The notes under the pieces were generated by a model. That model saw only the letters and a program-made list of their open reading frames with translations, did not search any database and had not been told where the DNA came from. From Macrostomum lignano (taxonomy: Eukaryota), in contig NIVC01004880.1 of the NCBI GenBank assembly GCA_002269645.1, positions 1-32,506 of the forward strand: a DNA stretch of 32,506 nt. Reading direction: 5' to 3'. The translations under genes were made by a program, and so were the position numbers. Within the stretch, counting starts at the first letter, position 1. The number at the start of each line of letters is the position of its first letter. Below, piece by piece: positions 9,045-32,506 of the stretch.

Positions 9045-9066
9045 TGTGTGTGTGTGTGTGTGTGTG
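9045..9066. repeat. (TG)11 microsatellite
   Basis: Directly visible. Confidence 0.95.
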
Positions 9067-12612: not shown

Positions 12613-12940
12613 CTAAGACGCTATCAGAAATAGATTAAGACGCTACCAGCGCTATACTAAGACGCTATCAGATTTTTTTGGCCCGGAAGTAAACCACAGA
12701 AGAGTAATTTCTGGCCTGGCAATAGACTTATGAAACGTATTTACTTGGCCTGACGCAATAAAACTCCAAATCCTCAGAAATACGATTCTGCACAGATTAT
12801 AGCCGGAAATAAATATGCTGCACATATGATCCACACTGGGAAATAAAGTAAACCTGCTTAGCAACTTGAAAAATGAAGCATCGCTGCCAATTGGTCCGAT
12901 GAGGCGCCATCTGCAGCATTCGAGCCTCGCACCGTCACTG

Positions 12941-13285
12941 AGCCCCTCATCATGCAAGCAGACACAGTCCCCATCGACGCCAGACCACATAGCCCCTCAT
13001 CATGCAAACAGACACAGTCCCCATCAACGCCAAACCACATAGCCCCTCATCATGCAAACAGGCACAGTCCCCATCAACGCCAAACCACATAGCCCCTCAT
13101 CATGCAAACAGGCACAGTCCCCATCGACGCCAACCATCATAGCCCCTCATCATGCAAACAGGCACAGTCCCCATCGACGCCAACCATCATAGCCCCTCAT
13201 CATGCAAACAGACACAGTCCCCATCGACGCCAACCATCATAGCCCCTCATCATGCAAACAGACACAGTCCCCATCGACGCCAACC
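12941..13285. repeat. 50-bp minisatellite, ~7 copies
   Basis: G(A/G)CACAGTCC recurs at 12961, 13011, 13061, 13111, 13161, 13211 and 13261. Confidence 0.95.
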
Positions 13286-13867
13286 CAATTACATTTAATT
13301 GGCATCACCGTCATCGCACTGCATTTGTATCGCCTACAATTTCAATCGCATGAGTCAGCCAAGTTGAGTGCATGAATGCCTCCACTGGGCTGCACAAGGC
13401 CGTTCGTTCAGTTATTCCGCCGCCCACTGAACCCATGTTGCTAATACGCGTTATGAATTACTCTAACTCGAAACGCACTCCAAACACGTCACGGCTGAAA
13501 GCCTCGGCAAGTCGGACTTCTTGAAGATTAAGCCAGTAAGTTGGGAGGGGTTAAATAAAGTCAACCTCGTTAGCGACGCTCGTTTGCGGTAGCATCGCTA
13601 CAGACTTGGCTGAATTATCGAATCGGCCACTGCTTGATGCTTCTAAGTTTGCAGCTTGAATATATTATGAAAAAGTTAGGCAACACTTTGAAATTTGTAG
13701 TCTAAACTTTATTTAGAATGAATTCTGGTGCTATCATTAAGAGATGGTTATAATATCACTATTGGTGCCATTAGTTTTTGCATGACGTGATTACTTTCAG
13801 AACGCTGAATGTAGCATCTTTAGGCCTGGGTACCAGTACGCAGTAGAAGCCAGAGCTAATGAGCAGA

Positions 13868-16800
13868 TCAACTGACCGGCAAGCCCAGAGCAGTCCGGGC
13901 CCGCAGAACCTTAGCAACCAGCTGCTCCCGGTACTGCAGCATCAGCGGATCCCGCACGTAGTCGTCTCGATGCATTTCTTTGGACCCGCCAATCGAATAG
14001 TGATGTAGGCCAGCTACGTTGTACTTTATAAACTCCGTGTTTCGCTCGTTCAAATACTGCCATACATAGTTCACGCCAAGCATTAGCACAAAGTGTGGCT
14101 TGATGATCATCTTTGACCGGGAGCCATGGACGTGCACCTCAGCCTCGCGGTTCAGCTTCAGCAGAGTGTTTAGCTTCAGGCCGGAGATTGTAGTGTTGGC
14201 CGATACCCCGGGATCGCTGGCCCATTCAAGACGGAAAAAAGAGTTCTGAAACAACAGACCACCGATGCTACCGTCCGACATGAAAGCTCGGGTCAGGTCC
14301 CGCCAGCTGCGAAACCCCTCTCCTCTCGGCACAATCACTTCGTCCGTATCGGTGGAAACCACGAACTCGTACTGTGCTGCAGTTCGCAGTACACAGTCCT
14401 GCAGCATTACTATGGTACCGTAGTACTTCACTTCTTCTGCGGAATCCGACGATTTGGTCTTGCCGTCAACTTTTAGTGGTGGGTGGAAGGGAAGGACGGT
14501 GACGTCACTGGCGAACTGCAGGTGAAGATGTTTGTTATGATGGTTGGCTTCATACACTTGTAGGCGAAGTAATATAAGAGGTACGTGTAGCCATGGATAT
14601 ACAGAGCTACAAATGTATGCATATTATGTATATTATTCTTCAACTTTTGAGGGAAAACATTGGAAGTCAATATTTATAAAGTCAAAATTACATGTTTTGT
14701 TTGAATAAACAGTTAAGAAGCACTGCAAAGGTTTAAGGCCACTCACGTGCTTATTCGAAAGCAGCTCGGTCACTCGCCTGCTCGTTGAGTGCTTGTACAC
14801 AAAGAAATGGTCGGCGCCAAAAAGGCGGTTCAGTTCCAGCGTCTGCACCAGCTCGTCCACCTTGTCGTACTTGGACTGCAGAGGTGACATGCACACAGCG
14901 AATCTGCCGTTGCGCACCGGCTCGGACGGCAGCGGAATCACCGGGTGCACTGCGTGGGGCTGACCACAGGCCGACCTGCGGGCAGATGCGACCAGTTGAG
15001 GTTCTGAGCTTCAGTTTGTATTCTGAGCTTCAGTTTGTATTCTGAGCTTCAGTTGGGGTTCTGAGCTTCAGTTTGTATTCTGAGCTTCAGTTTGTATTCT
15101 GAGCTTCAGTTTGTAGGGTTGCGTTTGGTTTGGGCCGTCGGGGTGGGGGCTGCTCTATTAGTATATGTACTTGCATCTCGCTTTCTTCTCTGTACATGCC
15201 CACCACCCCAGTTGGGTGAGTCACTTAAATCGATCTATCATCGCTGACTATTTAATCGCTCGTAAAATTATCGTGCATCAAAATATACTTCGTAAACTTA
15301 CTCTAAATTCTCGGCTCTTACATCTGTGGCAGCGAGAACCCAGTGCAAGTGCACTCATGGCCCAGAACACCCTTCTACCGCCAAAGTTCAGTGGAACAGA
15401 CGGCACTGACGTGAGAAAGTGGCTGCGCATCTTTGAGGAATTCGCCAACGATGCGAAATGGGATGACGCGACCTCAGCGTCGAAGGTGAAGCTGCTGCTC
15501 ACGGGAGAAGCCCAACTGGTCGTCTATGACCTGGCCGAGACATGACAAGAGTTTTAAAAGTATAAAGGAGGACCTCACAAAGTTATATGGAGGCGAAGCG
15601 GACAGCTTTAAGGCCATGAGCGACTTCTACGCGAAAAAACGTGGAGATACCGAGACACTGCGTGAGCTCTGCTTTAACCTGAAGCTGCTACACCAGAAAG
15701 CCAGACCGGAGGACTCAATTGTTCAGCGAGACCGAGATGTGCGCTTCAAGCTTCTGAAGCTGCTCAAGGCCGAAATTCGTGACAACCTGCTTAAGGCAGA
15801 GGTCGCAGAGACCTCCAGCCTGGAGACTCTGCTGCAGCGGGCGGCTCGGCTGGAGGAGCTGGCTGGGCGACAGTCGGTGGCGGCAGTCAGAGCCGTCAGC
15901 GCTACATCATCGGCAGAACCAAGCGAGGACCGCCTGGACCGACTGGAGAAACGCATGGAGGAGCTCATCGCGAGGGTCAGCGTACAGTCGGGTACCGACA
16001 CTCGGCGTCGCCGTCAACAGCGAGGAGGCGGCTGCTTCAAATGCGGCCAGCTCGGACACCGTGCAGCGCAATGTCAGCAGCGAGAGAAACAGCCGGGTCC
16101 GATCATCTGCCACAAGTGCTCTGGGCGGGGGCACAAGGCCTCTGTCTGCCCATCGAAGGCTTCGGGAAACTTTTAAGGGTTGGTGCAACGGGTGCGGGAC
16201 CCACACCAACCCCAAGGAGCAATCCCGTGCTTCATGCTATTTTTATACCTGGAGAGGCAAACGGCAAGCCGTGCCGCTGGCTGCTGGACACCGGAGCGCA
16301 GACCTCGCTGATCAGCGACGTTGCTTTGAGAGAGCTGGACGGTCGCTGCGAGCTGAAGCCGGCAGATGTCAGGCCTGTGTCCGTGGACGGCTCCGTTCTC
16401 GAGCTGTTAGGAAGCGTGAGCATTACGGTGCGACTCAGTCATCAGCTGCGCAGACAAATGGACGTGCTGGTGGTCAGAGGGATTCGCCCAAACTTCATCC
16501 TGGGGATGGATTTCGTGAGCAAGGCGGCCAGATCGCAGTTCAGCATCGACCAGGGTGCCAAGACAGTCGCATTCGATGGTGAGGCGGTTCCGTTCAGTAA
16601 CTGCGATTCCAAGCAAGATGGCCCGCTGTCTTGTTGCTTGGTACCCACAGTGATCATCGCCAGAGTTCAGGGCGCCGTCGTGGTACCGCCAAGGTCAGTT
16701 AAAGTGGTGGACGTGACGACCGAGACCAAGCAGGCACATGGCTGAACCCAGGCAAGAGCTTCTTTGCCTACCGGAGCGTCACGTACCTGGGTCACCAAGT

Positions 16801-19800
16801 CTCTGAGAGCGGCATCGCACCTGCCGCGGAGAAGGTCGAGGCGATCAGGCGGATGCCGGAGCCGCAGTCTGAGGAGGATGTTCGACGCATCATCGGCATG
16901 CTCAGCTTCTACCGCAGGTTTCCGCAGGTCACGGCGGCTTCGTGTGGACGTCAGAGCATGCTGCGGTGCTGGACAAGTTGAAGGACGCGCTGACCCAGGC
17001 CCCGGTGCTCCAGCTGCCCGACTTCAGCAGGCCTATCGTCATCAGCTGTGACAGCAGTGCTGTGGCCTTGGGTGCGGTGCTCAGCCAGGAGCGCGACGGC
17101 CAGGAGCTGCCAGTGGCCTACGCTTCCCGGACGCTGAGCAAGGCAGAGCGCAACTACAGCACCACGGACCGGGAGCTGCTCGCGATTGTTTGGAGCCTCA
17201 AGCAGTTCCGCATGTACCTGAGCAACAGCTGCAAGATCCAGGTGTTCACCGACCACAAGCCGATCACTGGGCTGCTCAACGCGAAGGAACCAACCGGTCG
17301 GCTGGCACGTTGGCTACAGCTCATTCAGGAGTTCCCCCTGGAAATCCTGTACCGGCCCGGCAAGGAGAACATCGTGCCAGACACCCTCAGCCGAGCAGCG
17401 GCGGTGCAGTTCCAGATCGCTAATCTGCCTGACGAGCAGGACCAGGACCAGGTTCTGCACGCGGGTTCGGCACGCGATGCTCCAGCCCAACTTTCAAGTT
17501 CCGGCGGCGGTGAGTGCATCGGTCCAGAAGCTGCTGCCCTATCTGACGCTGTCACCGGACGGCGCACTGCTCCACAACGGGTTGCCGGTGATCCCTCAGC
17601 ACATGAGAGCGGAGCTGCTGCAACAGGCGCACGACCGGCCGAGCGCGGGTCACCTCGGACAGCGGCGGGTGCTGCAGGCTCTGCGCGAGCGTTCCTGGTG
17701 GCCGGACATGCGCGAGGACGTGCGGGACTGGGTGCGGAGCTGCCTGGTCTGCCAACGACGCAAGGGAGCGCCAAAGCGAGCGCTCGCTGAGCTGGTGCGG
17801 CAGCCGCTACCGGCCAAGCCGTGGGCTGTCATGCAACTCGACATCAAGGGCCCACTGCCAGTCACCGAGTCTGGCAAGCGCTACATCATCTGCTTTGTCG
17901 ACACATTTTCAAAGTGGGTGGAGGCGGCGGCCCTCGGCCAGATCGACGCCAAGACGGTAGCCGAGGCTCTGGTGACCTGCGTGGTGCTGCGCACGGAGTT
18001 CGGAGGTCGTGCACTCGGACCAAGGTCGCCAGTTTGAGGCCAAGTTTTCAAGCAGACCTGCGCGCTGCTCGGAGCAGAAAAATCGAGGACCTCACCGTTT
18101 CACCCCAGCGGCAACGGGAACGTCGAGAGGTTCAATAGGACGCTGGGCAACATGCTCTCCGCATTCTGCTCAGAGAATCAGGCCAGCTGGGATGCCCTGC
18201 TGCCCTATGTCGTGTGGGCCTACAACAGCTCTGAGCACAGCTCCACGGGCGAGTCGCCGTTCAAAGTGCTCCGCGGCATCGAGCCCAGACTGCCGGTCGA
18301 CTTGGCACTCGGTGGGCAGTGCGACCAGCCGCAGGACTGCGCGGACCTGCAGGCGAGAATCAGGCGCGGCTTTCAGGTAGTGCGGGCGCACCTGCACACG
18401 GCCCAGAAATCGCAGCACGAGTTCTACAACCTAGGGGCAGAGACTACCGACTTCAAGACCGGTGACCGAGTGATGCTGACGCACCATGCGATGAAGCGCG
18501 GCCAGTGCAAGTCGCTGTCGAACCGGTGGTCCGGCCCGTTCATCGTCCTTAAGAAGATCAGCCCTGTGAACTACCGGCTGCAGGCTGTGAACGGCAGGCG
18601 CCGCTTGCTGGTTCACCACGACCGCTTGAAGCGCTTTATCGACCGACCGAATCTGAGCGGCAGGCCGCCAGCCAAGCCGGCCACCGAGGACGACTGTCAG
18701 AGCGTCCTGGACGCCGCGGGCCAGCTGGCCGGCCCGGACGCCTGGGAGCCGCTGCGCAACCCGGACGCGGCTGAACCCGGCAACACGGTGCGCCGGTCGG
18801 GCAGGCAGCGCCGGCGGCCGGATTTTTACACGGCGACCTGTTGACGTGCTTTATTTCTGATCGGGACTTTTTTCGCGTTGCATGAACTTTTTTTTGTTTG
18901 CTTTTGTTTTATCCCGTTTTTTATCCCATGTATTTTTCTTGGGGGAGAGTGATGTAGGGTTGCGTTTGGTTTGGGCCGTCGGGTGAGGGCTGCTCTATTA
19001 GTATATGTACTTGCATCTCGCTTTCTTCTCTGTACATGCCCACCACCCCAGTTGGGTGAGTCACTTTAATCGATCTATCATCGCTGACTATTTAATCGCT
19101 CGTAAATTATCGTGCATCAAAATATACTTCGTAAACTTACTCTAAATTCTCGGCTCTTACAAGTTTGTATTCTGAGCTTCAGTTTGTATTCTGAGCTTCA
19201 GTTTGTATTCTGAGCTTCAGTTTGTATTCTGAGCTTCAGTTTGTATTCTGAGCTTCAGTTTGTATTCTGAGCTTCAGTTTGTATTCTGAGCTTCAGTTTG
19301 TATTCTGAGCTTCAGTTTGTATTCTGAGCTTCAGTTTGTATTCTGAGCTTCAGTTTGTATTCTGAGCTTCAGTTTGTATTCTGAGCTTCAGTTTGTATTC
19401 TGAGCTTCAGTTTGTATTCTGAGCTTCAGTTTGTATTCTGAGCTTCAGTTTGGAATTCTGAGCTTCAGTTGATTCTGAGCTTCAGTTGGATTCTGAGCTT
19501 CAGTTGGGATTCTGAGCTTCAGTTGGGATTCTGAGCTTCAGTTGGGATTCTAAGCTTCAGTTGGGATTCTGAGCTTCAGTTTGTATTCTGAGCTTCAGTT
19601 TGTATTCTGAGCTTCAGCTTCTATTCTGAGCTTCAGTCGAAATGCACTCAGCCGACTGAGTGGGTCTCCGATTTAGTCATAGTCTGGAAACCAGATAGGA
19701 CACTACGCTTGTTCCTTGACCCCAGAATCTCAGCGAATTCATCATTTAGGACCGTTACCCAAGACTATCAGAGGATCAATAAAAACTGATATGTAAAATG

Positions 19801-22800
19801 TTGGGACCAAAATTTTCTCTCTTCACTTTCCCTTTGATACAATGTGAGGCTTTCCCTGTATGGACTGCTAACAGCTTTTTATGCACCTTATACATGTACG
19901 TGATGAATAAACTGCCGTTCGGTCTGAAAGATTATCCGGAGCAACAACAACAAGATACTCTGTCAGGGTTATTAGAAGGAAGCGTCACAGGGCGCGCCTC
20001 TGCGCGAGGTAGCGAACGAATGGCAGTCGCCGAAATGCCAAGTGCGCGCCTGTTGCCGCCGGTAGGTGTCTGCAGCGTCAGCAGCAGCATCTCCTGCATC
20101 GGCTGTGGGCAGTACGACGGCGTGGACGATGTGGCCTGCCATTTAGAGTCGCTGACGGCGCAAAAGGTCGTTTGGACGGACCAGGCAGGCGCGGTGAAAA
20201 AAGTGCCGCGTTTGAAAAAAAAATTGCTCGTCGCTGATCCTGAAAGTGGCGAGCAGCAGGCCAGCATGGGCCGCATCTACTTTTCATTCGAGCGGGTCCG
20301 TCAGCGTCTCTTCATGTACCATTTATTAAAAATCGGTTCAGGCATTCCGGCTGTAGACTGAAATACCGGTCGGATCTAAGAGATTTAGTATATTGTGAAT
20401 GATGTTTGACGTAGCCCTAATCAAAGATTTTTATATTAGCTTTTCATATCGAGGTTTCAGTAGGTCTGGACCATAGACTGTTGATATGAAGTGGACTTTG
20501 TCGAAAGTGGAAGTGAAGTCTTTAATCTTTTAGACATGTGCCTATCTCTGTGGTGTAATTTCGTTTTCCAAAATTTTAGTTTGCTTTGGTGCGAAGCTAT
20601 CTGTACAGAAAGGAGATTCTGATTGTACACTGCTTTAATGAACAACTGTAAAAATTTGGTACAAATATGAACACAGAGAAGCATTTTCTAGAGGTTAGAA
20701 TTGACCTTCACTTTCAGTTGTGATGAAAGGGAGTTTGTCTGAAGTGGATGCAGTTTCAGAGATGCTAAGCTTGAAGTGTGGAAGATGAAGTTCTCACTGT
20801 CGAAAGAGAAACTGAGTTTGAATGAAAATTGAGGTAAAATGGTGTACCTTCAAGCGGCAAACAGTGGCAGGACCAAGCTAGGGCAGCGGAGCGAACGAAC
20901 GTGCGTCGGCGTGAGCGAAATCGGCGCGGTCGGCTACGTGGTGCCGCCCGACGAGCTGCTGCTGCGCTGGCCCATGCCGATCTTCTGGTTGGCGCCAGCG
21001 ACTGTAAAGCTTATTTCAACGGTACCACAAGGCACAAGGTCGGGATGCTGAACACCCTCAAGGTCGCCTTGCGGAGAGGAGCTCTGACAAAGCTAGCGCT
21101 CGACCTAAGCTGTGATATAATCTCTGCAGGAGGTGTATCAAGGCTGACCCGGGGATTCACTGTAAGGACCTGTGTGCCGGATGGATCCTTTTCTACACAT
21201 CGGCGGACCAACCAGACGTGGAGGTGTTGGAGCGCTGATAGGACCAAAGCTGCAGCAGAGCTGTCGCTGCGTGACACAGCGGTCGCCCTCGGAGACCTAA
21301 ACGCGGTTTTTGTAGGTCGTGACTGTTTGTGACGTCTCGTGAGAACGGCAACAGCAGAGCACTGGAGGACTTCCTGGAGAGGCAGGACATGGTGTCTGCC
21401 AACACCCGCTTCCGCAAGCCACTGCCACATTCGTGGGCTGCAAGCGGAGACGGCGGAACTCGCATGCGCGAGTAAAAATGACTCATCGTCTGTTCTGTTT
21501 TAGCACAGAAAAGCACGTGACTGCCACATACGCAAGTGACCCTGAGTCACGCGACCAATGTATGACAATCCTACTTTATTTAGCATCTGACCTTGGATCA
21601 CGCAGGCTCCCATGATTTTCAGGTCCAAATAGGTAAGTTTCCTTAGGCTAATGGCGCGATTTTCACGCGACTTACGAGGATCTTGACGCTATCAATGCGG
21701 GCTAGCTGAGCTCGATTCTTCCACCGTGAACTCTTACCCGCTACTAAGGAGAGCCAGCCGCCTCTTTCTCCATTTCACGCTTTTGAAAGTTTTACAGATT
21801 CGAGAAGCGCGCAGCACTTCAACAAGAGAGCGACTGCTTCGAAAGATTTTTTCTACTCGTAAAAGTCTTCGTCGAGTCAGTCAGTCAGTCCACATTTCAA
21901 TATCGAATTTAGTAATTGCAGTGTCCTACGTGTCGAAATTGTGAAACGCTTAGTAGCAAGGAGCATTGGAAAGGGTTTACGAGCTATTTACCATCTATTT
22001 ACAAATTTTACAAAAATCAATTTCAATGCACTTGTAGTGAGCCGCTAGTTTAATGTTAGGCGTCGCACTTAGGCAGCAGTTTCTCTCGCCCGCGCCCTCG
22101 CCCTGGGTTGCTCTCTGCCGCTGGTCAGCTTCCCGCCTCCCTTTTGTCTGTCTGTTTGCTGCCCTCTCTCTCTTTGCTGTTCGTTTTCTGTGCTCCTGTT
22201 CTCAGCCTCCAGCTTCTCTGCTGCGGGCTGTCCTTGTTTCGTTCCATTCCCGTTTCTCCTGTCATGTGACTTGCTCACATGACAGGCCTTGTTTTCTTGG
22301 AGTCCTAAAGAAACTCGCTGGTCCTGTTTGCGGGAGAATCACGTGCCTAAGACCCTTTCCTAAGGAGAGGAGTGACTCATGTTTCTAAAAATAGACACTG
22401 AGTCACAGCCTGGCGCACTGTGCCCGCAGACCTCAAGTGACGTCAATTCTAAGGTCTCGTGCGGAGGTCTTGTGCGAGGTCTTGTGCGGAGGAGAATCCC
22501 GCTCTATAAATAGGACCCTTCTCCCCTTGTTTCCGTCAAGGAGTTTTCCGAGATTTGGTCTTCTGAGAGTTTCGTCTTCTAAGACCCCGTGTGCGCCCTT
22601 GTCTGAGATTGAACACCCGTTCTCTGTCTGCGTACATTGAGTTCTCTGCTATTGGTCTGACTGAGACCCATCTAAAGCAAACCCCAAGCCTGTGAGAGGC
22701 TAACAAAGCCCTCCCATCCACCAACCAAGCCCGGCAGGTACTGCTGACGAGACGCCCTGCCCTGTACGTTGAGCTGCAAATCTGCATGTTGTGCTGAGTT

Positions 22801-25575
22801 CGTTGACTTCGTTATTTCGTTCCGACGGGAAGCTCACCTCATCGAAGGCCGAGACCTGAAGGAACTGGTGGCAGCACTACCTACGCGTCTGAGAGCTACG
22901 AAGAAGGCTTACGAGAGAAGAGGCTCATGACTTAAGGTAAACTTAAGTGCCTAAACCGGGAAGCAGAAGCTCTGTACTTCACTGGTAGCAGCGGTGGGAT
23001 TCAAAGACCTACCAGACCACCTCGAAACAACCCTAAGTACTTCACACTTGACATCTTGGTTCTTTTGAATTTAATACAGACTCTAAAATAAGATTTGGTC
23101 AGTTTTTTCTTCAAAATGGAACCGTGTTCAGTTTGGTCACTCACCTGACGAATGACACGGCATACGGCACCTCCCCATCAGCGGCCGGGTTCTTGCAGCT
23201 GATTAGCCACGATTCGTAGCTCTGGCCCTCACCATCGGGCATAACTTCGATTTCAGCCGGCACGGCCGCCATGACTGAGGCCGCTCGCCGATACCACAGC
23301 TGGCAGAGCACTTTGCCTCCGCCTCCTAACAAGGCAACGGCAAGCACTCGTACCACTGGCCTGCTCGAGCTGTCCCTCCGGTCATGGAAGGCTGAGTAGG
23401 TAGACAAGTTATGATCGCCTGGTCTGATGCTCTGGAAGCGAAACTCCTTCATTGGGTGCGTGAGGGCGATGGTCTTGTGTTAGGAAACTGAATTGGCCTT
23501 TGAATGAATTGATGGAACATGCTTCAATTTCTATGGGGATGATCTTTAGCTTCTGGATCGCCAGAAAACTTGGCTAGTCAATATTTTATGGTGGCTAATT
23601 TTGATCACCTGCTTTAACAGAAACTGGCAAGCATCCTGCTATGCAAGACAGTTATAGAAGCTATCAATTCAAGAGGACTCAATTAGCCGCTCAAATCGTC
23701 TTAATTTTAAGCCACTGTTACAGGCGTCAGAGCTTCTAAACCTCACTGGCCCGAGCGATTGAGCCTAGAAATCTGATGCGGTTTCCGGTTAAAGACTGCA
23801 GTGGCCTGCACTGTATAGAGCTCAGCGCAAACTTGAATAAATCGCTCGAATGAAAGAGGTATAAGCAAGGAAAACCACAGAAAACCTTCAATTCACATGT
23901 TATAAATCAGATGCTGCATAATTCTAAGAAACACTCAATCTTTTTAAATATAAATGTAGGTACACGTAATTAGCGTCTGCAATTGCGGTACAGCCGTAGA
24001 ATCGCATGAGGGGGAATTTTAAAACACTGTCTGCATATTGTGACACGATTTAAATGTGTAAAAGCGTGCTCAAACGGATCGTGATCGCGTGTTGGCTAGA
24101 GTCATCATCTAATGCACGAGAAATCCGAGCGTACAATCATGATTACAATGTAACGTTAGATACTGATGTTGAAGTCAAACTTGATGATCAAGTCAAATCT
24201 CTTTATTAAGACTTCTGAGCAATGGAGAGGCAATCAGACAAAATCTGCCGCGTGGCCAAATGCGCTGCAGGAAAAAAGCTTTGCGGGCAAACCTCGGCGG
24301 GAAAAAACTTGGCGGGCAATTCGCTCGCAGGCAAATTGCACTGCAGGCAATTCTCGTGCTCCCGTACTGATTTTTTCGGCAGCAATTGGCAGCTACGCGG
24401 CTTCAGCTCAGTAAAGCAATTGCTGCCGTTAAAAAATCTGTCCATGTCGTTATTGTAACCCTTTAAAATAAGCTACACTAAAGTGCTGCCTGAGCTAACG
24501 AAGATTTGCAAATGCTGGACCGGATTGAGAATGAATGTGTGCCTGAATCGACCGAGACTCGACGAAAACTTCACGTGGCAAGGTTCCGCCAGTTCCTCAA
24601 TGAGAAGGGGCTCTGCCAGGAGTTTGAGCGCGTACCGCGGATCGATTCCTGAACGATTACCTGAGGCTTTTCTATTTGTCTCTTCAAAAGCAGAATGGAA
24701 CATACTACGCGCCGAAGTCTCTATCTGTTTTCGTGGGGCCATTCACGGCACCTGGAATCCCCGTCCGTCAATCGCTAGGTGAACATCATTACCGGAGAAC
24801 CGGAGCCAAATACATTCGTTATTTTCCGGTAAAAATCTAAAACTGCCGGCAAGCAATTGAGTTGTTTTCGAAAGTCTTACTGCCGAAAACCATAGACAAA
24901 AGGGTACAATACTACTCAATACTTGGCTCTTCTTACTGAAATGTCTATGGCACTCAAAACCAAGTATTGAATCATATATCTACGCTCGTACAGCATAACC
25001 ACAACCATCCTTCGAAGGAATAGATGGGCTGCAATCATTGATGAAAGAATAGAAAGGATCGCTCATCTTCACGATGTTTAACGTTAATCGGGACTTTGGA
25101 ATTTCCCCCGCGTACAAGCTGCAGCCAGTAAGAACTTAGGGGGGACTATTATTAAACTCCACCAGCCAATGAAATTCATGGGGGGAATATCCCAAATTTA
25201 AGGAAGTCTTGTCCAGACTCGCTTTCAGATGAGCGATCCTTTCTATTCCTTCATCCATGGCTGCAATCTGTGCGCAATTGAAATGGGAAAGTTTGTTTGT
25301 CAGGAGAAAGTAAAAAAACTTTACACTTCTTAAGAGTTTACCTGGCCAAGTACAGGAGAATACAGCCAATTTATGCTGCACCATGGCACACGACGCACCT
25401 CATGCGTCTCAGCCATGGTCACGTGACTAACGTCCGCTAAAGAGTCGCTAGCCTTGTTCAGTGGGCTGATGAAGCGCAGACCCGCTATTAAAATCATTAA
25501 TACTGCGAAACACAGAAGGCAGTGACGCCCGGAGTTGCCAATCGAGTGTCGGCCCAGCCTGATTGAAAAGAGCAT
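13868..25575 (-). CDS. Glycosyltransferase family 92 (DUF23/galt-1-like) type II membrane protein, paralogue A; complement(join(13868..14515,14747..14975,23145..23446,25342..25575)), 470 aa
   Basis: Exon lengths 234+302+229+648 = 1413 nt give an open frame with GT-AG sites (phases 0/2/0). There is an N-terminal hydrophobic segment CLLCFAVLMILIAGL. Family-like motifs are TYSAFHDRR, AVCMSPL, ELNRLFGADHFFVY, QDC, DTDEVIVP (DxD), SKMIIKP and LHHY. Confidence 0.88.
14993..15111. repeat. 19-bp minisatellite (CTGAGCTTCAGTTTGTATT), proximal part, intron 2 of GT92-A
   Basis: About 6 copies lie between the exon-3 acceptor and the LTR insertion. Confidence 0.95.
15112..15322 (+). repeat. 5' LTR (211 bp)
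   Basis: TGTAGGG...CTCTTACA. It differs from the 3' LTR by 2 substitutions and 2 one-base indels by eye. Confidence 0.95.
15357..16176 (+). CDS. gag: Retrotransposon Gag with two CCHC zinc knuckles; frameshift near 15540
   Basis: MAQNTLLPPKFSGTDG..W..FEEFA.. is a capsid-like start. Knuckles are CFKCGQLGHRAAQC and CHKCSGRGHKASVC. Stop TAA at 16174-16176. Confidence 0.85.
16164..16212 (+). promoter_or_regulatory. -1 programmed ribosomal frameshift signal (G GGA AAC + 6-nt spacer + hairpin)
   Basis: The heptamer is in the correct gag phase (TCG GGA AAC TTT TAA). The -1 frame reads GKLLRVG into the protease. Stem GGGTTGGTG (16177-16185) pairs with CACCAACCC (16204-16212), with an inner GGGT/ACCC stem. 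Confidence 0.8.
16164..18844 (+). pseudogene. pol: Disrupted pol: aspartic protease, RT thumb only, RNase H, integrase
   Basis: LLDTGA (PR); LNPGKSFF..VTYLGH..SFYRRF (RT C-terminus, no YxDD core); CDSSAVALGAVL/DRELLA/TDHKP (RNase H); H..GHLG..C..C, LDIKGPL, HSDQG and NGNVERFN (integrase). Several 1-nt frameshifts are present. Confidence 0.9.
18953..19161 (+). repeat. 3' LTR (209 bp)
   Basis: Near-identical to 15112-15322 and preceded by a polypurine tract. Confidence 0.95.
19162..19636. repeat. 19-bp minisatellite, distal part, intron 2 of GT92-A
   Basis: About 25 copies, continuing the array in register across the LTR element. Confidence 0.97.
21033..21450 (+). mobile_element. Decayed non-LTR retrotransposon (RTE-like LINE) APE-endonuclease fragment
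   Basis: Across frameshifts it reads KVGMLN, DII(S)LQEV, ALGDLNA and NSRALEDFLERQDMVSANTRFRKP..TF, which follows the motif order of LINE endonucleases. Confidence 0.7.
22033..23002 (+). mobile_element. Candidate LTR remnant followed by a tRNA-Leu primer-binding site; boundaries uncertain
   Basis: TG starts at 22033 or 22054, TATAAATA at 22505, ...TTCA at 22981, then TGGTAGCAGCGGTGGGATTC (22983-23002). That is 19/20 complementary to the 3' end of eukaryotic tRNA-Leu as I recall it. I found no partner LTR or TSD. Confidence 0.5.
24495..24800 (+). mobile_element. Decayed Crypton-like (DUF3504 / tyrosine recombinase-type) transposon fragment in intron 1 of GT92-A
   Basis: Across frameshifts it reads IENECVPESTETRRKLHVARFRQFLNEKG..LNDYLRLFYLSLQKQNGTYYAPKSL(I)CFRGAIH(R)HLESPSVNR*VNII. 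This fits the L..L..FY...K.DG..Y...SL...R..I.RHL pattern I recall for Crypton/ZMYM proteins. Confidence 0.65.
25036..25259. mobile_element. MITE with ~33-bp TIRs and a perfect 8-bp TSD GCTGCAAT; termini related to the 11047 element
   Basis: Ends are CATTGATGAAAGAATAGAAAGGATCGCTCATCT and AGATGAGCGATCCTTTCTATTCCTTCATCCATG. GCTGCAAT lies at 25028-25035 and 25260-25267. Confidence 0.85.
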
Positions 25576-26552
25576 TTCTGCCGATTAGGAATTCCAAACA
25601 GCTGATAGCGATGCTTGATTCTGCCGTGGCTCTCTGCAAAATCTGTTGAGCACCAGCTGTGATGCTGTGAGCTAGCCTCTCTCGGTGTGCTAGGTGTGCT
25701 CAGAATAGCCACTAATATATAGTGAATGCAAGCCTTGCTGTAAGTGTTGCGAAGTTCTCAAGCTGCCGCTGCAGCGAGGCTGTCCTGACCAATTGTTCGG
25801 GAGAACAATGCAGACTCTACCTTCAGTACGTTTAAATTCTTGCGGTGGATTTAGCAGTACAATAGCGAGAACAGAGAAAAATTGCTTTGATAATTTAGCA
25901 CAGTTCTTTGGCCCCAAAACCCGTACGCCAATATACTCTGCTGCTTACGACAACTGCGCAGCGAATTTCAAATCGTTGTGGCCAGTTTAGAGGTTTGTGG
26001 CAAGATAATATAGAGCCAATTCACACAAGGGCCGGTGCATCTTTCATTGTGCTTCTCTGAGAGAGTAAAAAACGTACTGAGAAACTCCACGCATTAGAAG
26101 GCTGACTGGAAATAGGGTAGAGTCTGCATTGTTCTCCCGAACCATTGGTCAGGACAGCCTCGCTGCAGCGGCAGCTTGAGAACTTCGCAACACTTACAGC
26201 AAGGCTTACATTCACTATATATTAGTGGCTATTCTGACCAAACCCAGCACACCGAGAGAGGCTAGCACACAGCATCACAGCTGGTGCTCAACAGATTTCG
26301 CAGAGAGCCACGGCAGAATCAAGCATCGCTATCAGCTGTTTGGAATTCCTAATCGGCAGAAATGCTCTTCTCAATCAGGCTGGGCCGACACTCGATTGGC
26401 AACTCCGGGCGTCACTGCCTTCTGTGTTTCGCAGTATTAATGATTTTAATAGCGGGTCTGCGCTTCATCAGACCACTGAACAAGGCTAGCGACTCTTTAG
26501 CGGACGTTAGTCACGTGACCATGGCTGAGACGCATGAGGCTCGTCGTGTGCA
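25385..26552. repeat. Inverted repeat: arms 25385-25821 and 26116-26552 (~437 bp, ~11 mismatches), 294-bp spacer; covers upstream region and most of exon 1 of both GT92 genes
   Basis: Manual reverse-complement comparison. Each arm has a TATA-like CACTATATATTAGTG about 140 nt upstream of its ATG. Confidence 0.95.
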
Positions 26553-29500
26553 TTGGTGTCGCACAAATGCATCGCATTCTCCTGCCTTTGGCCAGGTAAT
26601 TTTTTACCCTTTAAAATAATTTTTGAATCACACGCGCTGGGGTTTGAAATTTTGGCTGAGACATGGTATGACTTTAAAAGCTGACATAAATTCAGCAAAT
26701 CGCTATTTTTGCTAAAAAGCTTCTGAGAAATATACATCACTTCAAAACGACTGTCGAAGTCATGTCAGGTAAAAGCCGTGTTCAAGAATTTGTGGCCTAA
26801 CAAAAATAAGTCCGTAGAAAATCTGGCAGAGTACGGAAATTGCAAACTGTTTTCGCGAAAACTGTTTCGCCAGTATAGTGTTACAGCCAGAGTTACTTTT
26901 TACGTAGCTTCAGCTCTGGTGGAATTTACCGTGGCGATCGATCCACGCCCTTAAACTGGCATTGCGATTCTCCGAGGACTCCAGAGCGCTTCTTCGCTTC
27001 CCCCGGGGCGGCAGGCAAATGGATCAAAGCGGAATATTTGAATCCGCATCAGCGCTGCGCTGGTGTGGGCTTGTGAGCTAATAGGACAATTGCCGGCAAG
27101 TACGTGCGATATGCCAGAAGCAGTTGGATATTTTAGTACAGTACACTGTGTCCTACGCGCATACTCCCTGCTCATGATCCACTCCTCCCCTCGAAAAAAC
27201 GCGTGTTTATTTTATATCCATTTGCGACAACTTCCCTTAACGTACACGCAACCCATGGGTGTATAACGTTACAGTGTCTTATTACTCTCTGGTCGTGACA
27301 CTGGAGTCCTTGATCGGTGCGGGTGTATCCGGGATCGCTCGTCCCCCCTACGTAAACAGGTAGCCCAGCTTTTGCCCTACTTTCAACTGCATGAGGAGCT
27401 GATACGCTCGTAAGCAGACGTTCGCTCGTAGTTCTGAGTTAACTAACCATTCTGCATAACTCTCTGTTTATATTCACCTGCGAATGGAACGAGTCGGAGC
27501 CTCAAATTAGAATATTTTCAGGTAACGCGGCTCTGGGTCTTGCTCCTGCCCTTCGTCCCGGTTTGTGCTGTTTGTGTTTTTCTGTTTTGGTGTGCTCGGA
27601 GAGTACAAGTGCAGGACTCGACATATAAACAGCAATACTAGTTATTGAATACAGCGAGAAAATAACACAAGAGCCTTAAGAAGAGCTTTGGAGAATTCAG
27701 AACCTGCACTGACCAACGAGCAAACCAATAGACGTGAGAACGGCGATTTGGCCACTGTACAACGAGCGAATCAATAAACGTAACGGCGATTTGGCCACTG
27801 GTACGCCGCCTGCTGCTTGAGTTCGTTATTTTCTGGGAGCTTGTTAGGCTGAGTTCTTGCCAGAGCGTCATAACGCCGGGAGATCATATAGCTTTTTGTA
27901 GTACTGTACCGTCTACTCTATTATAGTGTGTACAACCTACAGTATCGAAACTAGAAGCACCCGAGAGTGTCACCACACCCCGAGCCGCAGCGTGAACTCT
28001 GAGTGTCACAACACCAGAGGGATCGAACTATTATCGCAGAGCGTCGTCACGCCTGCTCGTATCCATAAAAGTACCGACAGAGCGTCACTACGCCTGTTAT
28101 ATTACGTGTAAAATAATTGTACTCGGACTGGGTACCCAAACCGACCCGGGTTACAACACGATCAAAGCGGAATATTTGAATCCGCATCAGCGCTGCGCTG
28201 GTGTGGGCTTGTGAGCTAATAGGACAATTGCCGGTAAGTACGAGCGATATGCCAGAAGCAGTTGGATATTTTAGTACAGCGTACACTGTGTCCTACGCGC
28301 ATACTCCCTGCTCATGATCCACTCCTCCCCTCGAAAAAACGCGTGTTTATTTTATATCCATTTGCGACAACTTCCCTTAACGTACACGCAACCCATGGGT
28401 GCATAACGTTACACAGTGTCTTATTACTCTCTGCTCGTGACACTCGAGTCCTTGATCGGTGCGGGTGTATCCGGGATCGCTCGTCCTCCCCCGTACGTAA
28501 ACAGGTAGCCCAGCTTTTGCCCTACTTTCAACTGCATGAGGAGCTGATACGCTCGTAAGCAGACGTTCGCTCGTAGTTCTGAGTTAACTAATCATTCTGC
28601 ATAACTCTCTGTTTATTTCACCTGCGAATAACTCTGGACGAGTCGGAGCCTCAAATTAGAATATTTTCAGGTAACGTTTTCAGCTGTTTTGAACTTTGTT
28701 TCGGCAATAAATATAATAATAATTAATAATAATTGATTACACCTGACTTAATGGGCAGATGTGCAACCGACAGCTCAGCCGCAGCTATTGCGCGGCGCAT
28801 CTGAATGCTGCGCACGGCTGTTTAGTCCAAGGACTGGGGGTCGCCACACACACCCTCAATTACCCCAGCTAATGCTGGCACCCATTTTACAGCTGGGTGA
28901 ACTGAAGCAATGCAGAGTTAAGTGCCTTGCTGAAGGACACAAATTGTTCCGAGTAGGTCGAGAATCGAACCCTCGACCTTTCAGTCGTGGGTCCGATGCC
29001 CGAACCTCTAGGCTAAAACCCCTCTAAAGGTAGACAACAACCCGCGTATTTACATGGCTAACTTTGAAAGGTCAGTGAATGTCAAGGCAGGCAAGCATTT
29101 CATCTTAAAGGAAATATGATGCTCCCTTGTCCAATACAGGAGCATCAGTTTCTGAGCAGCAATCCCGCGGACAGAAGTTTGTTTACCTACTCGGCCTTCT
29201 ATGACCGAAGAGACAGCTCCAGACGGCCTGTGGTCCGAGTGGTCGGCATCGCCTTGGGTGGCCGGGTAGACGGCCAGCTTTGCCAACTGTGGTATCGACG
29301 AGATACATCGGCGTGGTATCAGCGGTCGGCGATGGTGGCCGTGCCAGCCACTGCGGAGATTGTGCCTGGGGGGCACGCCTGGCCCTACGACTATGTGGTC
29401 ATCAGCTGCATTAATCCGGCCAGAGATCGGGAGGTACCGTATGGCGTGTCCTTTGCTAGGTGAGTACACAGATACTGGAATAAACGGATAGGTCACTTGA

Positions 29501-32500
29501 AAAAATGATTTCATCGATTCTTTCTTCAGTAGCAAAATTAGTTTTTGCCTTTAGAACAAATATATATATATTTGGTTATTCTGTTGTACAAGATATGTAA
29601 AGTTTTGGAAGCTGCAAAAATTGCCTTTCCACAAGCAGACCCATCAAATGAGCATCAGATCTCTTCTCTGTTGACACTGAGCTCTCGACTGCCCCAATCG
29701 GATGCACTGAAACCGAACTGGCGGGATGTTTTGTGGACCTGGCACTAACGCGAGACCTCTGATCCTCAGGTCTCTCGCTGTCCGTCTTGGTACATTCTAG
29801 ATCCACCAGCTTCCTAGACGCCTGGTGCAGATAATCGGCGCTCCAAGGCAGTGTTGGCCCGACGTAGATACCATTTCTCGTAGTTTTCAACCACAAGCTA
29901 GCTTGATCAAGGAGTCCGTGTTTGCCTACCTCCGCCATCACACTCCTCCGCTGCCACAGCTTACTTTTCGGGTCGTGTAGAACCACAATCGAGCCGATTC
30001 GGATTCGGTCGAGACTCTTCTTAGACTTGTGGCACTGCTGCATCACTCACTGTCTTGTGAATTTCAGATGCGGTCTGCTCAATCTGCTGAATTGTGCTGT
30101 GCCATTGGGGTTACAGCTTCGTCAATGAACAGGGAGGGAATTCCTCCATCATCGGATGTCCATACAGAATGATGAAGGGAACAGTATGCCTTTTGCCATC
30201 TTTTCCTGTCTATGTCATATTTCGATAGTCCCAGGATCAACTGATATTCTTTTTTTGGCAGACTTAACTGCAGATTCAGTCCTTCCATTACTTTGGTGAT
30301 GGTAAGGCGATGAGAATCTGGACTCAATTGACAAAGGCGTTGACTTTGAATGGAGGGCCTGAGAACCCGAGTCTGATAGCTCACGGCACGCGTTGATAAA
30401 CTTGTGAGCCGGAGCTCAGAAGCTCAGAATCCCAACTGAAGCTTAGAATACAAACTGAAGCTCAGAATACAAACTGAAGCTCAGAATCCCAACTGAAGCT
30501 CAGAATCCCAACTGAAGCTCAGAATCCCAACTGAAGCTTAGAATCCCAACTGAAGCTTAGAATCCCAACTGAAGCTCAGAATAGAAGCTGAAGCTCAGAA
30601 TACAAACTGAAGCTCAGAATACAAACTGAAGCTCAGAATCCCAACTGAAGCTCAGAATCCCAACTGAAGCTCAGAATCCCAACTGAAGCTTAGAATCCCA
30701 ACTGAAGCTTAGAATCCCAACTGAAGCTCAGAATACAAACTGAAGCTCAGAATCCCAACTGAAGCTCAGAATCCCAACTGAAGCTCAGAATCCCAACTGA
30801 AGCTTAGAATCCCAACTGAAGCTTAGAATCCCAACTGAAGCTCAGAATACAACTGAAGCTCAGAATACAAACTGAAGCTCAGAATCCCAACTGAAGCTCA
30901 GAATCCCAACTGAAGCTCAGAATACAAACTGAAGCTCAGAATCCCAACTGAAGCTCAGAATCCCAACTGAAGCTCAGAATCCCAACTGAAGCTCAGAATC
31001 CCAACTGAAGCTCAGAATACAAACTGAAGCTCAGAATCCCAACTGAAGCTCAGAATCCCAACTGAAGCTCAGAATACAAACTGAAGCTCAGAATCCCAAC
31101 TGAAGCTCAGAATCCCAACTGAAGCTCAGAATACAAACTGAAGCTCAGAATCCCAACTGAAGCTCAGAATCCCAACTGAAGCTCAGAATACAAACTGAAG
31201 CTCAGAATCCCAACTGAAGCTCAGAATCCCAACTGAAGCTCAGAATACAAACTGAAGCTCAGAACCCCAACTGGTCGCATCTGCCCGCAGGTCGGCCTGT
31301 GCTCAGCCCCACGCAGTGCACCCGGTGCTTGCTCTGCCGTCCGAGCCGGTGCGCAACGGCAGATTCGCTGTGTGCATGTCACCTCTTCAGTCCAAGTACG
31401 ACAAGGTGGACGAGCTGGTGCAGACGCTGGAACTGAACCGCCTTTTCGGTGCCGACCATTTCTTTGTGTACAAGCACTCAACGAGCAGGCGAGTGACCGA
31501 GCTGCTTTCGAATAAGCACGTGAGTGGCCTTAAACCCTGGTTGTGCTTCTCAAGTATATACTTTCTGGTGTATAGTTTATGAAAAAAGCATCATCCTATT
31601 AGATGTGCGTACAAACATCATCCACCTAGACTTGTCCAACTGGCCATTTCTTGATTTTAGAGTTGTGAGCCTTCCTCCAGTTCTTAGTATGTATCTTCTT
31701 TTCTCGACCCTTGGTGATTTTAATGTGTACATGTATGTATACGTTGTTATAAAACCTACCGCGCTGATGATTTGTCATGCCGGCGGCTTGGCGGCTGTCT
31801 CCTGGCCGGGTGCCTGAATCCGGCGCCCTATAACGATGGGAAAAGCACTTATGTACTTGTATCTGTGATTCTGACTCCTCAAAAATAATGTTTCTCTTTG
31901 TTTACTCACCTTTTTATTAATATATCTTCACTTACACCAGCCTCATACTCATATCTCGCCCATTCGCACCTGCAGTTTGCCAGTGACGTCACCGTCCTTC
32001 CCTTCCAACCGCCATTGAAAGTAGACGTCGACCCGCAGCCTCCCGGCTACGTTGTAGAATTGAAGTATTTCGGCCAGTGCGCGATGCTGCAGGACTGTCT
32101 GATGCGCGCTGCGGCTCAGTACGAGTTCGCGGTTTTCACCGACATGGACGAAGTGATTGTTCCGAGAGGAGAGCGGTTTCGCAGCTGGCGGGACCTGACC
32201 CGAGCTTTCATGTCGGACGGTAGCATCGGTGGTCTGGCATTTAAGAACGCATTCTTTCGGCTTGAATGGGCCAGCGATCCCGAGGTCTCGCGTAATGCCA
32301 CCATCACTGGTCTGAAGCTGAGCGCTCTACTCAAGCTGCGCCGCGAGGCCGAGATCTATTCGCCGATATCCAGGTCGAAGATGATCGCCCAGCCCCATCA
32401 TGTCCGCATTCTGGGGGTGCACAATGTGTGGCGCTATTTTAATGGGAGAAGCACCGAGTACGTTAAATTCGAAACAGCAGGACTGCACCACTACCGCAGG

Positions 32501-32506
32501 TGGGCC
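26362..32506 (+). CDS. Glycosyltransferase family 92 paralogue B; join(26362..26595,29140..29459,31291..31519,31976..>32506), runs off the window end
   Basis: Same exon structure and phases (0/2/0) as paralogue A. Motifs are a TM segment, TYSAFYDRR, AVCMSPL, YFGQCAMLQDC, DMDEVIVP, LGVHNVW and LHHYR. Confidence 0.88.
27022..27527 (+). repeat. Direct repeat copy 1 (~506 bp) in intron 1 of GT92-B
   Basis: GATCAAAGCGGAATATTTG...ATTTTCAGGTAACG, near-identical to 28160-28676. Confidence 0.93.
28160..28676 (+). repeat. Direct repeat copy 2 (~517 bp)
   Basis: Near-identical to 27022-27527 with a few substitutions and small indels. Confidence 0.93.
28706..29022 (-). mobile_element. tRNA-derived CORE-type SINE with (TTA)n-like tail
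   Basis: The minus strand has an A box TAGCCTAGAGG and a B box GGTTCGATTC. The plus-strand CCCATTTTACAGCTGGGTGAACTGAAGCA..GTTAAGTGCCTTGCTGAAGGACACA resembles the MIR/CORE domain. An AAT-rich tail lies at 28706-28733. Confidence 0.75.
29860..30046 (-). mobile_element. Possible decayed gypsy integrase C-terminal fragment
   Basis: RIGSIVVLHDPKSKLWQRRSVMAEVGKH..(fs)LIKLACG..RN..YLRR resembles the IG..V.IQDP.TKRW..G.I.EVG..Y.I.L.SGR..RNRR.LR tail of some gypsy integrases. Confidence 0.45.
30413..31272. repeat. 19-bp minisatellite (CTGAAGCTCAGAAT[CCC/ACA]AA), ~45 copies, intron 2 of GT92-B
   Basis: Same unit, same gene-relative orientation and same position next to the exon-3 acceptor as in GT92-A. 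Confidence 0.97.

Follow-up and report, generated by a model that had tools for sequence, protein, structure and literature searches.

Short islands of near-identity between two old head-to-head GT92 paralogues of Macrostomum lignano point to interlocus gene conversion

How can two adjacent genes be almost identical in some segments and deeply diverged in the segments between them? This question is raised by a pair of glycosyltransferase genes of the flatworm Macrostomum lignano. The original prediction for this locus explained the pattern by recurrent, tract-limited gene conversion between inverted copies. We therefore compared the two genes segment by segment, with a further paralogue as outgroup.

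The head-to-head GT92 gene pair

The analyzed window, 32,506 nt of M. lignano DNA, contains two divergently transcribed four-exon genes of glycosyltransferase family GT92, gene A on the minus strand and gene B on the plus strand. Gene A (13868–25575), whose model rests on GT-AG introns, Pfam, and UniRef, encodes 470 amino acids in exons at 25342–25575, 23145–23446, 14747–14975, and 13868–14515, the last of which includes the stop codon. Gene B (26362–32506) has exons at 26362–26595, 29140–29459, 31291–31519, and 31976–32506, where the window end truncates exon 4; two UniRef proteins of the B type (P0003 and P0004) show the full C-terminus to be present in other copies of B. In both genes, the open reading frames were intact and every intron was GT-AG. 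The two start codons are ~0.8 kb apart, and the evidence for this head-to-head arrangement comes from a single assembly of a neopolyploid genome very rich in repeats.

Searching protein databases gave best matches that were all from M. lignano, and gene A was 92% and 87% identical to UniRef GT92 proteins of this species. Orthologues from other Macrostomum species were not found in this search, the next matches being Logan proteins at 34% identity. Besides A and B, the family in M. lignano includes paralogue C (L001) and the paralogues P0006, P0007, and P0017. Paralogue C has the same exon structure as A and B, shares the exon lengths of 302 and 229 nt with gene A, and stands without a head-to-head partner in the 10 kb upstream of it.

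GT92 enzymes include C. elegans GALT-1, the plant enzymes GALS1-3, and a pigeon beta-1,4-galactosyltransferase. Both proteins matched the family profile PF01697 far above the cut-off of 23 bits (A, 100.6 bits, E=1.4e-28; B, 106.5 bits) over profile positions 2–213 of 249. A DxD-type motif was retained as TDTDE in A and as TDMDE in B and C. Searching the PDB by sequence, with single-sequence and profile methods, gave no relevant structure. A fold search was conducted with an AlphaFold model of A (pTM 0.73, mean pLDDT 68.7), and its best PDB match was poplar GalS1 (8D3T; E=6e-18, 429 columns), with a TM score of 0.67 normalized to the target. The flatworm enzymes resemble GalS1 and other GT92 enzymes in the PF01697 match, a predicted N-terminal helix, an all-beta N-terminal domain followed by a GT-A domain, and the kept DxD motif. 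However, sequence identity with GalS1 is just 13–14%, and the likeness is one of predicted fold.

Three near-identical islands in a diverged background

For each segment, we calculated the synonymous divergence (dS) of the two genes by the Nei-Gojobori method, and nucleotide differences were counted in ungapped comparisons of the inverted blocks. The dS was 0.024 in codons 1–59 of exon 1, 0.49 in the last 19 codons of the same exon, 0.91 in exon 2, 0.076 in exon 3, and 0.85 in exon 4, a more than 10-fold range along the gene. Synonymous differences numbered 5 at 97.8 sites in exon 3 and the first part of exon 1, compared with 106.7 at 211.3 sites elsewhere (Fisher p=7e-17), and chance is excluded as the cause of this pattern. 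As the original prediction held, a single duplication date is insufficient to explain such values. Uniform dS with only dN varying would have spoken against exchange; dS itself differed among the segments. The dN/dS ratios of exon 2 (0.36) and exon 4 (0.25) correspond to plain purifying selection.

The first island, tract 1, covers 424 nt and forms an inverted repeat around a unique spacer of 294 nt (25822–26115), the halves of which had no alignable similarity. Its arm in gene A (25398–25821, minus strand) consists of 246 nt of 5′ flank or 5′ UTR and codons 1–59 of exon 1; the counterpart in B lies at 26116–26539 on the plus strand. The arms differed at only 9 of the 424 nt (7 of 246 upstream of the ATG and 2 of 177 in the codons), and similarity stopped abruptly at either side. 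Both the start codon and the membrane anchor are encoded within this tract. The remaining 19 codons of exon 1 (A, 25342–25397, minus strand; B, 26540–26595), which include the conserved VPWC motif, differed at 16 of 57 nt. The estimate of ~11 differences in ~437 nt for the upstream region and exon 1 was close to the 12 of 437 that we counted (A 25821 to 25385), but exon 1 is not uniformly near-identical as had been supposed. For gene A, the exon 1 donor GGCCAG/GT at 25342 is supported by the homology of this diverged end to paralogues C and P0006/P0017, although the database models use another donor, CATGAG/GT at 25399. An interpretation of tract 1 as a foldback transposon was rejected, since start codon and anchor run in frame into the VPWC segment common to other paralogues. 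The shared 246-nt non-coding stretch is probably a transcribed 5′ UTR, because at least ~112 nt of it lie within the UniRef model P0004, which is open at its 5′ end and whose frame was assigned in this analysis. That A and B are co-regulated, co-localized, and different in specificity can only be inferred.

The second island, tract 2, is centered on exon 3 (A, 14747–14975; B, 31291–31519). Its unique part (A, 14730–14997, minus strand; B, 31269–31536, plus strand) comprises the last 22 nt of intron 2, the 229 nt of exon 3, and the first 17 nt of intron 3. Mismatches amounted to 7 of 268 nt, with none in the 39 intronic nucleotides (0 of 22 and 0 of 17), and farther into intron 3 the match broke down, with 13 differences in the following 30 nt. 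The earlier counts for exon 3 (7 of 229) and for the identity into intron 3 were thus reproduced. Upstream of exon 3, both second introns carry the same 19-bp minisatellite over 0.6–0.85 kb, as determined with TRF. In B, it comprises 45 copies (30419–31273, plus strand) and adjoins the 22 nt preceding the exon. In A, the part near exon 3 (14998–15111, minus strand) matched the B array in register with 6 of 114 mismatches, and the array resumes with a distal part of 25 copies (19162–19637, minus strand). Between the two parts lies a defective LTR retrotransposon of the Ty3/gypsy type (15112–19161, plus strand), bounded by LTRs that are 98% identical (15112–15322 and 18953–19161), with TG..CA ends and a 4-bp target duplication, AGTT. 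It showed Pfam matches to zf-CCHC, aspartyl protease, RT_RNaseH, and integrase, and no Pfam match to an RT polymerase domain. This element is context only and stands outside the conversion. The 400 nt distal to the A array had no similarity to the equivalent flank in B. The GC3 of exon 3 was 0.75–0.78 in A and B compared with 0.63 in C, and the other tracts showed no consistent excess.

The third island, tract 3, lies within exon 4, directly past the DxD motif. It spans 25 codons (PRGEGFRSWRDLTRAFMSDGSIGGL) without synonymous change (A, 14255–14329, minus strand; B, 32162–32236, plus strand) and contains a perfect run of 62 nt (A 14255–14316), whereas 7e-6 runs of this length are expected by chance. 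Differences were found at 0 of 19.2 synonymous sites in the tract and at 63 of 104.8 in the remaining exon 4 (permutation p=0.0002). Exon 4 had correctly been called diverged, its nucleotide identity being 76.5%, but it is itself a mosaic, and this third tract had been overlooked. Similarly, the description of the pattern as an exon-by-exon mosaic must be revised, given that one edge falls inside exon 1 after codon 59, tract 2 extends into both flanking introns, and tract 3 is internal to an exon.

Outside the islands, the genes are distant. Exon 2 was 69% identical in nucleotide sequence, and its protein identity of ~58%, as originally estimated, corresponds to 58 identical residues of 100 in A or 106 in B, with an indel of 6 amino acids. 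Neither word matches (word size 7) nor local alignment against shuffled sequences detected homology in the rest of the introns or distal to the minisatellites. Since near-identity is found in non-coding DNA as well, constraint at the protein level cannot account for it.

Gene conversion as the probable explanation, and its alternatives

We consider that this mosaic very probably arose by non-allelic (interlocus) gene conversion, in which three or more short, separate tracts were copied between two inverted paralogues of old origin. The tract-limited exchange between inverted copies that was originally predicted agrees with the heterogeneous dS, the identity of intron edges and 5′ flank, and the distance of C everywhere: its dS to A and B was 1.0–2.4 in every segment. 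The comparison is a within-genome triplet with this one paralogue as outgroup, which is nearly saturated at synonymous sites. In a GENECONV-like run test, of the kind proposed with the prediction, the longest concordant run of polymorphic sites for A-B was 69 sites, a length reached in 0 of 10,000 permutations. The longest runs for A-C and B-C, 4 and 5 sites, were not significant, leaving A-B as the only significant pair.

According to this conversion model, A and B would be old head-to-head paralogues with a background dS of ~0.85–0.9 and unalignable introns. Tract 1, ~424 nt of 5′ flank or 5′ UTR and the first 59 codons, would have been copied from one gene onto the other. Tract 2 would comprise at least 268 nt of exon 3 and intron edges, running on into the shared minisatellite, and tract 3 would be a patch of ~62–75 nt in exon 4. 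Conversion tracts usually measure tens of bases to a few kilobases, and the tracts here (~424 nt; at least 268 nt plus up to 0.6–0.85 kb of satellite; 62–75 nt) are within this range. The template would have been genomic DNA and not cDNA, because tract 2 includes intron edges. Conversion between partners that are ~70% identical outside the tracts is mechanistically disfavored, and prior homogenization has to be assumed; the islands may have remained open to conversion because previous events preserved their similarity. Homology to seed the pairing of A and B may have come from the minisatellite common to both genes and from the short palindrome geometry, and the remaining gene may have escaped through accumulated divergence, indels, and insertions. 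As an unlikely extension, the minisatellite 22 nt from exon 3 would repeatedly seed pairing, and the exon 3 tracts would mediate flip-flop inversions that swap the module of exons 1 and 2. If true, the anchor and N-terminal beta domain would be exchanged between two different catalytic C-terminal halves, and the locus would act as a built-in switch for domain shuffling, with as many as four enzyme combinations in one population.

The reverse history has only a slim chance of being correct. A and B would then be young duplicates (~2% diverged), and the end of exon 1, exon 2, most of exon 4, and the introns of one copy would have been imported from distant GT92 paralogues. Potential donors exist in the several further GT92 paralogues of M. 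lignano (C, P0006, P0007, and P0017), and exon 4 of B shares many C residues absent in A, such that 31 changes are unique to A and 12 to B. However, nearly the whole gene and three introns would have been replaced while three islands were spared, a far less parsimonious course than moving the small islands. Moreover, in exons 2 and 4 no known paralogue comes near either gene, C being the nearest (dS 1.0–1.6), and A and B are mutually closest there (dS 0.85–0.91).

An assembly artefact, with the near-identical blocks arising from collapse or chimeric joining or with the inverted order itself misassembled, is a little less credible again. The M. lignano genome is indeed hard to assemble, with 93% of read pairs multi-mapping and three paralogous copies of most blocks (PMC10733133), and satellites adjoin one tract. 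Nevertheless, the blocks are non-identical, with 9, 7, and 1 differences, and in both genes the reading frames are open and the splice sites canonical. Furthermore, the same mosaic and the same diagnostic residues were observed in five UniRef proteins (P0001–P0004 and P0010), which derive from other copies or another assembly. The amino-acid differences within the tracts (S/R37; G/A, I/L, and P/A in exon 3; G/R in the exon 4 tract) recurred as A- or B-specific residues, constant in each database copy that covers the position, although these are protein-level observations with small counts. In each of these five proteins, exons 2 and 4 were of one type, either both A or both B.

Fewer grounds still favor strong selection on the nucleotide sequence itself, through promoter or 5′ UTR function, splicing enhancers, or RNA structure, as keeping the islands alike with no exchange at all. 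Tract 1 does span the probable 5′ UTR and core promoter, and splice signals lie within the intron edges beside exon 3. However, synonymous sites are conserved over 59, 76, and 25 whole codons in segments that are highly diverged in C, the dS of exon 3 to C being above 2. The exon 4 tract shows no special protein-level conservation in C, where the stretch is not strongly conserved, and identity beside exon 3 runs 11 nt beyond the donor consensus and also into the minisatellite. Least probable of all is cDNA-mediated (retro) conversion with a spliced paralogue transcript as repair template, which we rejected: the pattern looks exon-wise at first sight and A intron 2 contains an LTR retroelement, albeit one in which the RT polymerase domain was undetected, but the identity takes in intron sequence at either end of exon 3 as well as the 246 nt ahead of the start codon, the neighboring exons 2 and (mostly) 4 are unconverted, and one tract edge falls within exon 1.

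Regarding the age of the proposed conversion events, divergence was 2.1%, 2.6%, and 1.3% in tracts 1, 2, and 3, respectively, and was homogeneous (p=0.79). At 1.3–2.6%, the tracts would have about one tenth of the age of the background divergence. Comparing C among the three genome copies gave differences of ~0.3% in coding and ~2.4% in non-coding sequence, in agreement with the three paralogous copies of ~98% small-scale homology reported for M. lignano (PMC10733133). Because the in-tract differences between A and B are common to other database copies, no conversion is visible since the genome copies split. Judging from these sequence comparisons, the three tracts appear older than the split of the neopolyploid's three genome copies, and conversion is not demonstrably ongoing. 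The term recurrent, as originally applied, is therefore not supported, the tracts being equally diverged and their A/B residues shared among copies.

Comparison with known systems

Our literature search found no report of gene conversion in this flatworm. Whole-gene alignments would yield wrong duplication dates and gene trees for the GT92 family, as they probably would for further gene families of M. lignano, and both annotation and read mapping in the neopolyploid must handle near-identical islands within otherwise distinct genes. A and B also form a natural chimera, in which the anchor and the first catalytic part are the same and the N-terminal beta domain and the catalytic remainder differ. 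This would be useful for asking which module governs the acceptor specificity of GT92 enzymes.

Region-specific interlocus conversion is known from another head-to-head enzyme pair, CYP1A4/1A5 of birds. Likewise, in the head-to-head CYP1A1/CYP1A2 pair of mammals, it affects the initial 500 bp of exon 2 and exon 5 in its entirety (PMC3199271). These are also old enzyme paralogues that share the intervening region and form a mosaic of homogenized and diverged parts, and the last event is similarly datable and not recent. However, the enzyme family and phylum are different, the intergenic distance is 23 kb compared with ~0.8 kb in M. lignano, and here one tract includes the 5′ flank and start codon and another ends in a minisatellite.

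The inverted heat-shock pair Hsp70Aa/Ab of Drosophila is homogenized by conversion. The same was reported for inverted adjacent pairs of C. elegans, the hsp16 modules and hsp70-7/8, and conversion tracts of inverted adjacent paralogues in Caenorhabditis reach into introns (PMC3966223). As with A and B, these are close divergent duplicates with conversion over coding and 5′ regions, and sometimes introns. In contrast, the heat-shock pairs are homogenized over essentially their full length (concerted evolution), whereas homogenization in M. lignano is limited to three islands with ~770 nt of unique DNA and the rest has a dS of ~0.9.

Slightom, Blechl and Smithies are said to have described in 1980 a conversion tract between HBG1 and HBG2 that ends at the simple-sequence repeat of IVS2. 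Conversion is partial in this pair as well, with a boundary at an intronic repeat proposed to promote exchange. However, HBG1 and HBG2 were duplicated in direct tandem and have a single long 5′ tract, whereas A and B are inverted copies with several short tracts and a 19-bp minisatellite of 0.6–0.85 kb.

Palindrome arms of Y chromosomes are many kilobases long and nearly identical. Arm-to-arm conversion has been described for large chromosome palindromes (PMC3403216), which share with the present locus inverted repeats about a short spacer and intrachromosomal conversion. The M. lignano arms, at 484–491 nt and ~94–95% identity, nevertheless fall outside the class of large palindromes. Taken together with these systems, the A/B pair is an unusually clear but ordinary instance of well-known gene conversion and involves no new mechanism.

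Gene models of the head-to-head GT92 pair

The two four-exon genes, A on the minus strand and B on the plus strand, were modeled with exons 1-4 at 25342-25575, 23145-23446, 14747-14975, and 13868-14515 (A), and at 26362-26595, 29140-29459, 31291-31519, and 31976 to the window end (B). Every intron is bounded by GT-AG, with phases that match between the two genes. Both products scored far over the curated cut-off of Pfam PF01697 (GT92), and their best database protein matches were all Macrostomum lignano GT92 proteins; the A protein was 92% and 87% identical to its closest matches, and UniRef proteins P0003 and P0004 are the counterparts of B. These matches assign the window to this free-living flatworm or to an organism indistinguishable from it. 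A third paralogue, C (P0005, NCBI contig NIVC01000516.1, locus L001), showed an A/B-like structure, with exon 2 of 302 nt and exon 3 of exactly 229 nt.

For exon 1 of gene A, the donor GGCCAG/GT was chosen, supported by the exon 1 end motif RRVPWC...SP..Q, which is retained in C and in the more distant P0006 and P0017. The UniRef models of A (P0001, P0002, and P0010) are spliced differently: their donor follows CATGAG at 25399, and their acceptor lies 27 nt upstream of the modeled one. This alternative GT donor (CATGAG/GTGCGT, 25399-25404) coincides with the 3′ boundary of the first similarity tract described below, and its equivalent in gene B (26533-26538) has GC instead of GT. Alternative splicing of gene A exon 1 is possible. 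In P0002, which represents another copy of A, most of exon 3 is out of frame (AVQVRQGGRAG...), reflecting either an indel error in an older assembly or a pseudogene among the genome copies of A.

The window contains many minisatellites, and its GC content ranges from 29% to 65%. Positions 1-13867 showed no convincing gene. Arrays occur at 4-1114 (22 bp, 50 units), 1576-3018 (33 bp, 44 units, 97% matches), 3581-4685 (28 bp, with a 328-bp higher-order period), 12329-12540 (21 bp, 10 units), and 12941-13285 (50 bp, 7 units). Intron 1 of gene B carries a direct duplication of ~510 nt (27022-27527 and 28160-28676; 95.8% identity, 1.14 kb spacing), which may have arisen in tandem or may represent terminal repeats belonging to a small element.

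Tract-limited similarity between A and B

Rechecking the A-B comparison bore out all numbers of the original prediction. The upstream region plus exon 1 showed 12 mismatches in 437 nt, exon 2 only 58% protein identity with a 6-aa indel, exon 3 seven differences in 229 nt, and exon 4 ~76% nucleotide identity; the first 17 nt of intron 3 were identical, followed by 13 mismatches in 30 nt. Self-BLAST of gene A against gene B revealed nothing further alike except a shared minisatellite. The proposed exon-by-exon mosaic was, however, replaced by a tract-wise pattern, as three observations indicated. Tract 1 (A 25398-25821, B 26116-26539) has its edge inside exon 1, where A and B differ by 2 nt in the 177 of codons 1-59 and by 16 in the 57 of the last 19 codons. 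Tract 2 (A 14730-14997, B 31269-31536) takes in all the remaining 22 nt of intron 2 and then enters a 19-bp minisatellite. Exon 4 is itself a mosaic: over 25 codons the two genes show no synonymous difference (tract 3; A 14255-14329, B 32162-32236), and 62 consecutive nt of this stretch (A 14255-14316, B 32175-32236) are identical.

Nei-Gojobori dS between A and B was 0.024 for exon 1 codons 1-59, 0.49 for the rest of exon 1, 0.91 for exon 2, 0.076 for exon 3, and 0.85 for exon 4, thereby excluding a uniform dS with dN alone varying. Across the two large tracts, 5 of 97.8 synonymous sites differed, compared with 106.7 of 211.3 outside them (Fisher p=7e-17). The exon 4 tract had none in 19.2 sites compared with 63 in 104.8 in the remaining exon 4 (permutation p=0.0002), and the chance expectation of the 62-nt identical run was 7e-6. 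When C was added to the alignment, A and B agreed over at most 69 consecutive polymorphic sites, a run reached in none of 10,000 permutations; the corresponding maxima for A-C and B-C were 4 and 5.

An assembly artefact as the source of the near-identical tracts is argued against by the tracts themselves, which differ between A and B and so are no exact duplicates. Furthermore, their amino-acid differences (S/R at residue 37; G/A, I/L, and P/A at the exon 3 start; G/R in the exon 4 tract) recur as A- or B-specific residues in all five UniRef proteins where the models cover the position, and exon 2 and exon 4 types in these proteins are always matched, A with A and B with B. Slow evolution is not intrinsic to exon 3 or to tract 3, since C is far from both A and B in all segments, these two included (dS 1.0-2.4), and protein constraint cannot produce identity in the 5′ flank and intron edges, which are non-coding. 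Thus the core of the original prediction, tract-limited gene conversion between the inverted paralogues A and B, is well supported by the dS values, the run tests, and the non-coding identity.

Age and possible mechanism of the proposed conversions

The divergence of the three tracts was equal (9/424, 7/268, and 1/75; homogeneity p=0.79), and their pooled dS of ~0.05 was at most about a tenth of the background value. M. lignano has a neopolyploid genome, and most blocks of its assembly occur in three paralogous copies with ~98% small-scale homology (PMC10733133). The three genome copies of C were ~0.3% apart in coding sequence and ~2.4% in unique non-coding DNA. Among these loci (L001, L002, and L003), coding identity was 99.3-100% and that of unique flanking DNA ~97.5%, agreeing with the published copies, and minisatellite lengths differed widely. 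At the protein level, the A/B differences inside the tracts were common to all database copies covering them, and no conversion after the genome-copy split was visible among these copies. From these sequence comparisons, we infer that the latest conversions would be older than that split. The predicted recurrence of conversion was not established, given the equal tract divergence and the shared differences; it is plausible on mechanistic grounds. Exchange is disfavored between sequences that are ~70% identical, as A and B are outside the tracts. The tracts were therefore probably held similar as islands by earlier events while the remaining gene escaped.

The conversion template would have been genomic DNA, because intron edges and 5′ flank lie inside the tracts; the same features rule out cDNA-mediated conversion. 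Tract 1 forms a small palindrome with ~484-nt arms and a 294-nt unique spacer. The 19-bp minisatellite of intron 2 (A 14998-15111 plus 19162-19637; B 30419-31273) adjoins tract 2 and, at 0.6-0.85 kb, is the longest mutual homology between A and B, making it a plausible pairing seed. No A-B similarity was found distal to the arrays, which are partly differentiated, the unit variant AATACAA predominating in A and AATCCCA in B. The A array was split later by insertion of a defective Ty3/gypsy-type LTR retrotransposon (15112-19161) with TG..CA termini, an AGTT target duplication of 4 bp, and 211-bp LTRs of 98% identity. Its broken frames matched Pfam gag zinc knuckle, protease, RNase H, and integrase, with no Pfam match to the RT polymerase domain. 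The introns of C are each mostly one minisatellite (L001 10727-11141, 11538-12504, and 12940-13548; units of 39, 23, and 32 bp). The 23-bp intron 2 unit, read on the same strand, matched the 19-bp A/B unit at 15 of its 19 positions, a score equaled by only 1% of shuffles; on this alignment, a minisatellite at the intron 2 position may predate the A/B/C split.

Protein divergence and relation to known systems

The AlphaFold model of A (pTM 0.73, mean pLDDT 68.7) comprised, from N to C, a helix (16-35) consistent with a membrane anchor, a low-confidence linker, an all-beta domain (~60-193), and a GT-A domain. Its best PDB match was the poplar GT92 galactan synthase GalS1, with both domains aligned (E=6e-18). 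On this model, tract 1 corresponds to the anchor, the diverged exon 2 to most of the beta domain, the converted exon 3 to the first part of GT-A, and exon 4 to the DxD motif and the remaining catalytic domain. The A-B dN/dS was 0.36 for exon 2 and 0.25 for exon 4, indicating purifying selection on both genes. Relative to C, unique amino-acid changes were symmetric in exon 2 (11 each), and those in exon 4 (13868-14515 vs 31976-32506) numbered 31 in A and 12 in B (Tajima relative-rate p=0.004). This asymmetry is compatible with functional divergence of A; it does not amount to evidence for the different specificities originally suggested, and co-regulation of the pair is likewise only a possibility.

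A literature search on gene conversion in M. lignano yielded no account of this locus, nor any of the phenomenon in the species. The pair is of modest interest, chiefly for the care it advises in dating paralogues of this genome and for its use as a natural chimera in structure-function studies of GT92. Partial interlocus conversion leaving mosaics is well documented, and A/B adds a further case of it. In Caenorhabditis, the adjacent inverted paralogues of the hsp16 and hsp70 pairs have been converted, with tracts reaching introns (PMC3966223). The closest verified analogue is CYP1A1/CYP1A2, head-to-head paralogues with a common promoter region, in which only exon 5 and the first 500 bp of exon 2 were converted and the last event was datable (PMC3199271).
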